A stretch of 63,572 bases of DNA, the filler included, from Olpidium bornovanus S191 (lineage: Eukaryota > Fungi > Olpidiomycota): NCBI GenBank assembly GCA_017911155.1. It is 30 parts of 30 records of this genome, joined end to end, with 100 filler letters (N's around TTAATTAATTAA, not from the genome) between each part and the next. Parts side by side here need not be neighbours in the genome. Positions count along the whole stretch, not along the records: positions 47,656 to 49,277 come from JAEFCI010000852.1; 29 more parts are not named here. The stretch is one strand, 5' to 3'. This document shows, piece by piece, positions 47,556-49,377 of the stretch (its first letter is position 1; the number at the start of each line of letters is the position of its first letter). Made by a program: the position numbers and the translations under genes. Under the pieces are notes generated by a model, which was not told the DNA's origin, ran no database searches, and saw only the letters and a list, made by a program, of their open reading frames with translations.

Positions 47556-47761
47556 NNNNNNNNNNNNNNNNNNNNNNNNNNNNNNNNNNNNNNNNNNNNT
47601 TAATTAATTAANNNNNNNNNNNNNNNNNNNNNNNNNNNNNNNNNNNNNNNNNNNNCCCCCCCCCCCCCCCCTCGACTTGTGCAATTCCGTTGATTTTCTT
47701 TTCGATCCCTTTATTTTGATTTTACTCCCTCCCCCCCTTTTTTTCCCTTGCTTCGTCTTGC

Positions 47762-48660
47762 ATGCGCATAAAACCCACGAACCGCCGCAACATCAAAATA
47801 AAAAAGAGAATGAGGTCGTCGAAGCCGAGATCGCCGTCGGGCTTGAGCGTGCGTCGAAGTCGGAGAATGCTAAGTTTCGAGCGCTCCCTGTGCCGTCGGG
47901 CCGAGAGCAAGAGCGTCCGTTTGTGCGTCGATCTCGTGGCCGTGTTCTACGTCTCCGCCGGGGCGCTCCGCCTCCTTTTTCGTTTCGTCTTCTTCTTCTT
48001 CTTCGCAAGACCCTCCCCCCCCAGAGCACGGGCCCCCTGCGGGCGCGGCGCCACTACCTGCCATCCCATTCCCCGTCGTTCCGAAAGTCCTCTGCTCCGT
48101 CCCTTCCCCTCGACATCGAGAGGATCCCAACGGCGTTTTCGAGCTCGACACCGGCGCAACGCGCTGCCGAAGACACGCGTCCGGCGCAACGCGCTGCCAA
48201 AGACACGCGTCCGGCGCAACGCGCTGCCGAAGACTCAAAACGCCGATGCAAGATTATAAGGGACAACTTCCAGAACATTGCCGTAAGTTTCTTGCTATCT
48301 TCGGCAAGTTACTTATCTGATGTTTCCTTGAACTCAGGAAGCTCCGTTTTGATGCCTCACAGGAACCCATTCGCCGCTTGGCCCACTGCAACGGTGACCA
48401 GCCCAAGCCCATTTCGAGCCGGCTCTACGATGACACACGCGGTGTCCTGAAAGTCTTTCAGGAGAACGTGGTCCGCAATGCGTGTCTTTCTGCTTTGTTT
48501 GTGAGTAGATTGGCGAATAAGTAGTTTGCAAGCAGTGTGAGCAATTGCACTTACATATATCCTCCATCGTCGCAAGTCCAAACGCAAGGCTATCACGTCT
48601 CTGGATGTGGTCTACGGGCTCAAGAAGCAGGCGCGTGCCCTGTATGGTTTCGGCGGCTGA
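47762..48660 (+). CDS. Divergent histone H4-like protein (putative H4 variant; pseudogene not excluded)
   Basis: Exons ...-48282 | 48363-48500 | 48577-48660 join in phase 0 via GTAAGT..CAG and GTGAGT..AAG introns. They give [89 protein letters not shown], with the unmistakable H4 C-terminus. Exon 1 (47762-47914) and the start codon are inferred. Confidence 0.8.
48151..48240 (+). repeat. 30-bp x3 coding tandem repeat ([30 protein letters not shown]) in the H4-like N-tail
   Basis: CCGGCGCAACGCGCTGCCGAAGACACGCGT units start at 48151, 48181 and 48211. Confidence 0.95.
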
Positions 48661-49377
48661 GCTACCCTTACGTATAGTTTGATAGTCTTTGATTGGCCAT
48701 AACTGATGTTTAAAATTGCGCAACGGCTCTCCGCATTATTCGGCAGGCCATTTCCCCAACATCACTTTCCTACATACTGCTCAGAACCTGGTATGCATTT
48801 GATCGGTATCTTCGTTATATATTGTCGTACAAATCAGGCAGTGAGAACGTCATTCTAAACGGCAACAAAGTAAACGGAAATTGCCGAACATAAATTGCTA
48901 GTTGGCCGGTTGCAAGAAATTAATTTCTACTGCCACCGACTACCAATGTTTGCCGTGGTAACCCCTCCCCTACACCAACGGGCCACGCCCCGAGCCCAGC
49001 AGGAACGCGCGCACGTCACGCCTATTTTGTGCTGACCACCGCCGCCGCACGTTTACCGATATTTGCTCACTTAATTTACTGCGCCGATGTCCCACCGCTT
49101 ACGCGAGCTGGACCTGATGTGGTTGCTCAGCTGCGGGCTTGAACGGTATGCAAGCGCATGCGGCAGATTTGTCGTCGGCGTCCTCGCTGACGAATATTGC
49201 TGCGTTCTTCGGCGCAAGCTTTTGCCATCTGCCAGGGGTGCCGGCCGGCGGGGCGGCGAGCCGTGACTGCGGCGCGCNNNNNNNNNNNNNNNNNNNNNNN
49301 NNNNNNNNNNNNNNNNNNNNNTTAATTAATTAANNNNNNNNNNNNNNNNNNNNNNNNNNNNNNNNNNNNNNNNNNNN

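Follow-up and report, generated by a model that had tools for sequence, protein, structure and literature searches.

Histone H4 is the least variable of the core histones, and each of its few variants has revealed a specialised chromatin pathway. The latest such variant is the fungal H4v, a substrate of the ATRX-like remodeler SAD-6. The H4v of Neurospora is 62% identical to H4, is found in nucleosomes, binds H3 as well as ASF1, and is deposited by SAD-6/ATRX (bioRxiv 10.64898/2026.08.11.744009). The H4E/H4v group occurs throughout the Pezizomycotina, in basal Taphrinomycotina and in Glomeromycota, and has longer, divergent tails and an intron pattern of its own; an origin from an old retrocopy with later intron gain was proposed for H4E, which shows no phenotype in Aspergillus (PMC10878826). 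Other fungi also carry divergent copies. Five divergent H4s are present in Rozella allomycis (PMC10878826), and Laccaria bicolor has eleven H4 genes, several of them divergent (PMC3029354). In view of H4E/H4v, the five H4s of Rozella and the many of Laccaria, the statement in an earlier note on the locus described here, that true H4 variants are rare, is overstated for fungi.

The locus was found in the fungus Olpidium bornovanus S191 (assembly GCA_017911155.1). The window, that is the whole stretch of DNA analysed, comprises 63,572 nt, and all positions count along it. The piece at 47656-49277 (JAEFCI010000852.1) is a short 1.6-kb contig with a GC content of 55%. It carries an H4 paralogue with two unusual features: a repeat-bearing extension takes the place of the tail, and an apparent exon-boundary shift has replaced the H2B-contact end of helix α2.

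Gene structure, transcription and splicing

Translation of the piece revealed three colinear H4-like exons on the plus strand that are split by two phase-0 GT-AG introns (Table 1). The introns have a GC content of 0.43 versus 0.57-0.62 for the exons. Sequence of the piece is present in at least eight RNA-type runs from two studies, with 0.17-0.48 of its sampled words in each. Contigs of 545 nt from data set X1 and of 419 nt from data set X3, which belong to different studies, both contain the precise exon joints 48282|48363 and 48500|48577. The earlier note had placed the introns at precisely the positions that these contigs skip and had proposed to look for reads across the junctions; both joints are thus present in assembled contigs of two RNA data sets. 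The X1 contig extends to 48863 and the X3 contig to 48837, about 200 nt beyond the stop codon, and the intergenic region 48864-49156 is uncovered in X1 and X3, as expected of RNA. The evidence for splicing consists of assembled contigs from two runs, which settle the dominant isoform, and minor isoforms could escape such contigs. The H4 paralogue is transcribed and spliced exactly as modelled.

Table 1. Features of the H4-like locus of O. bornovanus, with positions along the window
Feature	Position	Strand	Remarks
Candidate start ATG	47762..47764	+	Out of the H4 frame in the assembly; in frame only with an extra T after 47810
Transcribed upstream stretch without stop codons in the H4 frame	47765..48150	+	Candidate Arg/Pro/Ala/Ser-rich N-terminal extension, or else 5′ leader
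(TTC)7, in frame	47984-48004	+	Within the upstream stretch
In-frame tandem repeat	48151..48234	+	30 bp x 2.8 copies, 10-residue units; last partial copy runs into the H4 basic patch
End of exon 1	48235..48282	+	Matches H4 residues 15-30; basic patch KRRCK partly kept
Intron 1	48283..48362	+	80 nt, phase 0, GTAAGT...CAG, between H4 residues 30 and 31
Exon 2	48363..48500	+	46 residues; H4 residues 31-69 (α1, L1 with +2 insertion, most of α2), then CLSALF
CLSALF codons	48483-48500	+	Terminal six residues of exon 2; no relation to H4 residues 70-75
Intron 2	48501..48576	+	76 nt, phase 0, GTGAGT...AAG
ALTYILH relic in intron 2	48547..48567	+	Frame of exon 3; matches AVTYTEH (H4 residues 69-75)
Coding part of exon 3	48577..48657	+	27 residues matching H4 residues 76-102 (L2, α3, C-terminal strand)
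Stop codon TGA (assembly)	48658..48660	+	TGG in X1 and X3 contigs
3′ untranslated region	48661..48863	+	About 200 nt, AT-richer, without histone stem-loop

At the DNA level, a DNA-type contig (X27, a run with another organism label) is 100% identical to 48446-48641, a segment that includes intron 2, and a second DNA-type contig covers 48044-48272 colinearly. No reads on the piece were seen in the samples (4-6% of each run) of two large poly(A) runs and one WGS run, for which the sample amounted to 1.9 Gb; these three runs bear the same organism label as the data sets that hold the piece. A search against Rfam gave no match to the histone 3′ stem-loop, and the mRNA is therefore considered to be of the polyadenylated type.

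Other splices around intron 2 were enumerated, and only 48501-48576 combines a consensus donor with RNA support. The alternative donor at 48482, about which the earlier note had cautioned, does exist as an option, but gives no open frame. A weak splice at 48484-48541 would retain the ALTYILH relic in frame and was not seen in the RNA contigs. Since the contigs confirm the splicing, the lack of R45, Y72 and H75 in the expressed form is independent of an uncertain splice model. The DNA contains two spliceosomal introns that the RNA lacks, which is not the structure of a processed pseudogene. The claim that the introns rule out a retrocopy thus holds for a recent processed retrocopy, but an old one that gained introns later is compatible with the structure.

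Two further observations concern the sequence of the piece. A 14-nt inverted repeat (86% complementary, 1-nt loop) at 48440-48468 falls within the most conserved coding part of exon 2 and is probably due to chance. Towards the right end, another transcribed segment begins at 49157 and is cut off by the edge of the piece at 49277. Left of this position, the contigs of X1, X3 and X25 (the last a DNA-type data set) have a sequence (...CCTTTCCTGCCAGAA) that differs from the piece, and no canonical splice signal is found there. The break at 49157 may reflect a structural difference between the sources, an assembly join, or an exon from outside the piece.

Divergence from canonical H4

In comparisons with PDB chains, exon 2 matched histone H4 with an E value of 9e-7 and exon 3 with 4e-9. 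The spliced product aligned to canonical H4 with 94 bits (E 6e-32) and 56% identity over 90 columns. Identity to canonical residues 15-102 amounts to 50 of 87 aligned residues (57%), and the alignment has two gaps, the deletion of A33 (one residue) and an insertion of two residues in L1. A divergent H4 had already been recognised in the earlier note; its count of 53 of 87 identities over residues 16-102 (about 60%) was slightly too high. No Pfam family was assigned to the single exons or to any of the longer ORFs on both strands, in the case of the exons because they are too short for the histone model.

The product shows the colinear order α1-L1-α2-L2-α3 plus C-terminal strand of an H4-type fold, with significant similarity to H4 along it. 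Most of the α2 core, α3 (LDVVY.LK) and the C-terminal strand are conserved, as are K16, R17, K20, R23-N25, R35, R36, K44 and K77-K79, and the canonical end LYGFGG is kept. All changes listed in the earlier note (K31E, loss of A33, R39H, R40C, G41N, R45P, L62Q, and VTYTEH to CLSALF) are present in our alignment, together with L49R, Y72S and H75F. The near-invariant residues R45, Y72 and H75 are consequently all replaced, in addition to R39, R40 and L62. R45 is a dyad-proximal residue that enters the minor groove and is a SIN site. Y72, H75 and Y88 belong to the H4-H2B bundle, and the C-terminal strand contacts H2A and ASF1.

An apparent exon-boundary shift at the end of α2

In a low-stringency tblastn search with canonical H4, the match of exon 2 ended at ENVVRNA, and that of exon 3 extended back into intron 2, where the piece aligns with AVTYTEH---AKRK of H4. 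When the intron was shuffled, the resemblance between ALTYILH and AVTYTEH had a P value of 0.0005 in the frame of exon 3 and of 0.002 in any frame. The CLSALF that ends exon 2 scores like unrelated sequence against H4 residues 70-75. The in-frame ALTYILH spotted in the earlier note is thus real and does resemble AVTYTEH, and splicing removes this relic from the mRNA. The reservation that the loss of Y72 and H75 depends on the splice model is settled by the X1 and X3 contigs: the expressed form uses CLSALF, and the protein lacks T71, Y72, T73, E74 and H75.

Relative to a colinear H4, the DNA holds 76 extra bases, namely 67 at 48483-48549 and a 9-base insertion (RRK) at 48568-48576. Of the 67 bases, 49 fall within the 76-nt intron, together with the 18 bases that form the old LTYILH codons and the whole 9-base insertion, and are spliced out. 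Left behind are the 18 foreign bases of CLSALF, and the distance from A69 to K77 is unchanged. The canonical spacing is restored because the intron leaves 18 foreign bases for 18 old ones. As judged from the sequence, the old codons for H4 residues 70-75 are stranded in the intron, and the end of α2 appears to have been replaced by a shift of the exon boundary. The 67 bases would be either an older intron with a decayed acceptor or an insertion that brought in a strong donor.

N-terminus, start and stop codons

The canonical tail SGRGKGGKGLGKGG with K5/K8/K12 is absent from the product, and homology to H4 begins at residue 15. The low-stringency search with canonical H4 detected no convincing relic of the tail in any frame of the piece. 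Its place is occupied by low-complexity sequence and the 30-bp repeat. Upstream of the fold, no stop codon interrupts the H4 frame over the 192 codons that reach the left edge of the piece (P=0.035; such a length was reached in 3.5% of dinucleotide-preserving shuffles). In the assembly this frame contains no ATG, and the H4 part also has no Met codon at all. The ATG at 47762, suggested as the start in the earlier note, is in a different frame from the H4 exons of the assembly, and its ORF ends at 48259. No joint that would mark an upstream intron bringing this ATG into frame was present in the RNA contigs covering 47731-48151.

The sole X1 and X3 contigs that cover this region (47731-48077 and 47744-48151) have an extra T after 47810. 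With this T, the ATG at 47762 opens an ORF of 247 aa with a pI of 11.5 that fills nearly the whole transcript. The extra T may reveal an indel error of the assembly, a frameshifted allele in the sequenced strain, or a near-identical second copy. A second difference affects the stop codon. In both X1 and X3, the A at 48660 is a G, which turns TGA into TGG and adds 14 residues up to a TAA at 48700-48702. Over 545 nt of exons and 3′ UTR, assembly and contigs differ at no other base. An A preceded by G is an unfavourable context for known A-to-I editing. RNA editing is therefore an unlikely source of this change, which moreover is complete in both contigs, at a position for which there is no DNA contig of those samples.

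At least in the strains from which the RNA data derive, the gene most likely encodes a protein of 247-261 residues that consists of a basic, repeat-containing extension of roughly 158 residues, which is probably disordered, followed by the H4 fold. A word-indexed protein search with the 202-aa upstream frame yielded no homologue of the extension, and no Pfam family was assigned to it.

The upstream region has a complex repeat structure. An imperfect palindrome at 48131-48156, centred on CGAGCTCG, stands directly before the first 30-bp repeat unit, where several contigs branch, and RNA contigs break or branch at the 30-bp array itself. The segment 48048-48157 is multi-copy: X1 has a 91%-identical version that diverges after 48157, and contigs branch at 48048-48077. 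An X3 contig leaves the piece at 48151, and another contig, seen in X1 and X3, passes from unrelated Lys/Arg-rich sequence into the 30-bp repeat at 48156. About 224 nt upstream of 47731, one X1 contig has a repeat-like block. At the left end of the piece (47656-47745), there is first a run of 16 C and then C- and T-runs (47726-47745); reads of unrelated poly(A) runs stick to this end only partially. Its low complexity is probably the reason why the contig ends here and alignments break near 47731.

Selection on the histone fold

When the coding sequence was substituted at random down to 56% protein identity, the frame stayed free of stop codons in only 16% of the runs. The locus itself has an uninterrupted frame of 89 codons, the length of each indel is a multiple of three, and so is the period of each of the two upstream repeats. 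For the 37 replacements, the BLOSUM62 scores average +0.11, compared to -0.63 +/- 0.27 in neutral walks that keep the frame (P=0.007). If residues 70-76 are left out, the mean score rises to +0.37 (P=0.002). GC contents at the three codon positions of the H4 part are 0.56 (GC1), 0.41 (GC2) and 0.69 (GC3), which looks coding. Since the replacements are more conservative than neutral drift predicts, the fold appears to have been under constraint. The conservative replacements, the preserved phase, the GC signature and the ORF together point to purifying selection on the fold through most of its history; such tests cover the past and not necessarily the present day.

Search for relatives and a parent gene

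Protein, metagenome and viral searches did not retrieve an orthologue. A word-indexed protein search for exon 2 within a stop-free 67-aa reference gave no candidate. HMMER searches with exon 2 against 1.84 billion representatives found only canonical H4 or tandem mis-predictions with about 62% identity; these representatives are clustered at 50%, and closer relatives could hide behind canonical ones. Metagenome contigs gave no match by protein pattern or by exact 36-mer, no relative was found among viral contigs, and the ESM Atlas returned only generic histone-fold clusters below a useful score. The exact products of two ORFs of the piece have no record. The motifs TSLD and KVF.ENV resemble basidiomycete-type or other non-ascomycete fungal H4, which gives a weak hint as to the possible parent gene.

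In data set X9, which has a different organism label, contigs are 96-97% identical to the 3′ flank and the intergenic region, but lack 122 nt at 48954-49075 and 2 nt at 48816. These contigs suggest the existence of a close relative or a divergent strain. Matches are thus spread over three organism labels (that of the RNA data sets, that of X27 and that of X9), and the sampled poly(A) and WGS runs with the first label gave no reads. Such a distribution would fit a symbiont, parasite or contaminant associated with the labelled organism, or else a region specific to certain strains.

Discussion

Precise splicing, homology to H4, the intact frame, the conservative replacements, the GC signature and the ATG-initiated ORF of the RNA-derived version all argue for a functional variant. 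Our preferred reading is therefore that the locus is a lineage-specific H4 paralogue that is transcribed, precisely spliced and makes a functional variant, and we put the chances of this at about even. The paralogue keeps the H4 fold between the basic patch (K16) and GFGG at the C-terminus, and has given up tail residues 1-14, several arginines of α1 and L1 including R45, and the end of α2 (Y72, H75) that packs against H2B. From textbook nucleosome structure one would expect that the conserved α2 core, α3 and the C-terminal strand still allow pairing with H3 and binding of H3-H4 chaperones, and that DNA binding near the dyad and docking of H2A-H2B are weakened. The protein might then serve as a specialised, low-abundance replacement of H4 or as a histone-fold partner outside the nucleosome. 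Destabilised or non-octameric particles and stage-specific use, as envisaged in the earlier note, would be possible consequences.

Several features speak against a functional variant. The missing ATG in the assembly, the stop-codon difference and the upstream 1-nt indel fit relaxed constraint; furthermore, the extension is without homologue, no orthologue was found, and R45P, L49R, L62Q and R40C are non-conservative changes at core or DNA-contact positions. A more specific proposal holds that a functional H4-fold protein with the extension of about 158 residues dimerises with H3 and forms no normal octamer. It would instead give rise to tetrasome-like or sub-nucleosomal particles or act as an H3-sequestering partner at a particular life stage, and its exon boundary would have shifted naturally, swapping six codons while the length of the helix was kept. 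We regard this full scenario as unlikely.

A quite possible, if not probable, alternative is an expressed unprocessed pseudogene. According to this explanation, a DNA-level duplicate of an H4 gene, or of a former variant, is still transcribed and spliced, makes no protein and is decaying. It would account for an assembly that has neither an in-frame start nor a Met codon, for the frameshifting indel and the stop-codon difference between the assembly and the RNA-derived contigs, and for α2 codons that lie in an intron with unrelated sequence in their place. The replacement of the N-terminal tail by repeat-rich sequence, the loss of invariant residues and the failure of protein and metagenome searches to find an orthologue are also in agreement with decay. 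However, the replacements in the fold are significantly conservative, and the codon-position GC signature is kept. In addition, neither the two indels nor the shifted splice disturbs the phase of the reading frame, the spacing after splicing is exactly that of canonical H4, and the RNA-derived version has a full-length, ATG-initiated ORF.

It is improbable, in our view, that the H4 part is just a 5′-truncated fragment that was fused to or captured by a multi-copy repetitive element and became an incidental part of a chimeric transcript. The abrupt start of H4 homology at residue 15, directly after the 30-bp minisatellite, would be expected in this case, and so would the 91%-identical second copy of 48048-48157, the contigs that enter or leave the 30-bp repeat with different flanks, the repeat-like block about 224 nt upstream of 47731, and the location on a contig of only 1.6 kb. 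But no transposon-related family was detected in any frame, no terminal repeats bound the H4 part, and neither conservative substitutions nor a preserved frame are anticipated for a passenger. It is highly improbable that the organism has no other H4 and that the locus encodes a strongly divergent canonical histone instead of a variant: the locus lacks an acetylatable tail (K5, K8, K12), R45, Y72, H75 and, in the assembly, a start codon, it has a long polyadenylation-type 3′ UTR and a modest contig depth, and even in Rozella and microsporidia the divergent H4s are described as groups of paralogues that include an H4 recognisable as such (PMC10878826).

If the paralogue is a true variant, as we favour, it would serve as a natural test of what H4 requires when it works outside the canonical octamer, as the tail, the dyad-proximal arginine and the H2B-contact face have been dropped. 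If it is a decaying duplicate, the finding is an ordinary one. Functional or not, the locus appears to record a splice shift that replaced part of a conserved helix, with the old codons still visible in the intron.

Comparison with known H4 variants

Trypanosome H4.V, human H4G, rice H4.V, Oikopleura H4t and bracovirus CpBV-H4 are likewise rare H4 variants with specialised roles, and in CpBV-H4, too, the H4 fold is preceded by a long, basic N-terminal extension (reviewed in PMC10878826). These variants are of unrelated origin, are 73-85% or more identical to canonical H4, and have none of the substitutions seen here. Rozella, Laccaria and Yarrowia (H4_1) provide further cases of independent H4 duplicates with graded divergence, some of them with N-terminal extensions and introns (PMC10878826, PMC3029354). 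By inspection, however, the H4s shown for these three fungi keep the Gly/Lys tail and the TYTEH region, and neither an extension with repeats nor a substituted end of α2 is described for any of them.

For a comparison of gene structures, the 22 intron sites of Yun and Nishida (PMC3029354, Fig. S4, Table S4) were mapped with an uncertainty of about one codon. The exon lengths of H4E include 29-32, 16, 88 and 60-63 nt (PMC10878826). The mapping is considered valid because the H4E-type sites reproduce the lengths of 32, 16, 88 and 63 nt of Flipphi et al. Introns of canonical Pezizomycotina H4 genes are located near codons 3, 48 and 94, and those of Laccaria H4 genes near 8, 27, 64 and 77 (PMC3029354). 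The introns of the present locus (30|31 and 75|76) exactly match none of the 22 sites; the nearest are one or two codons away, and the Laccaria site at about residue 77 is the known site closest to intron 2. H4E has 5-7 introns, near codons 19-20, 29-30 (phase 1), 35, 64|65 and 85|86, whereas only two, both in phase 0, are present here. No pair of phase-0 introns of H4E lies 135-138 nt apart, and intron 1 is 2-5 nt from the H4E intron i2, which is in another phase.

The proteins differ as well, as seen by inspection against the rows of Fig. S4 in PMC3029354 and the description of H4v. H4v aligns to H4 without gaps, whereas two gaps are needed here. H4E-type proteins have a unique C-terminal part in which GFGG is replaced (RP.YGFD..., PMC3029354 Fig. 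S4), and they keep the RRLARRGGVKR loop; the O. bornovanus paralogue, in contrast, keeps LYGFGG and the canonical α2 motif and has lost this loop. The N-terminal extension comprises 5-25 residues in H4E/H4v compared to about 158 here. Because both the intron pattern and the signature residues differ, the paralogue does not belong to H4E, and it would thus be an independent case of a divergent fungal H4 paralogue outside that group.

H4E/H4v (hheA in Aspergillus nidulans, NCU04338 in Neurospora crassa) is nevertheless alike in being a divergent H4 paralogue of about 60% identity (62% for H4v, 57% here) with introns, a polyadenylated-type mRNA, an altered, longer tail and a partly kept basic patch. 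By analogy, its binding to H3 and ASF1 and its deposition by SAD-6/ATRX may serve as a working model for the paralogue of O. bornovanus.
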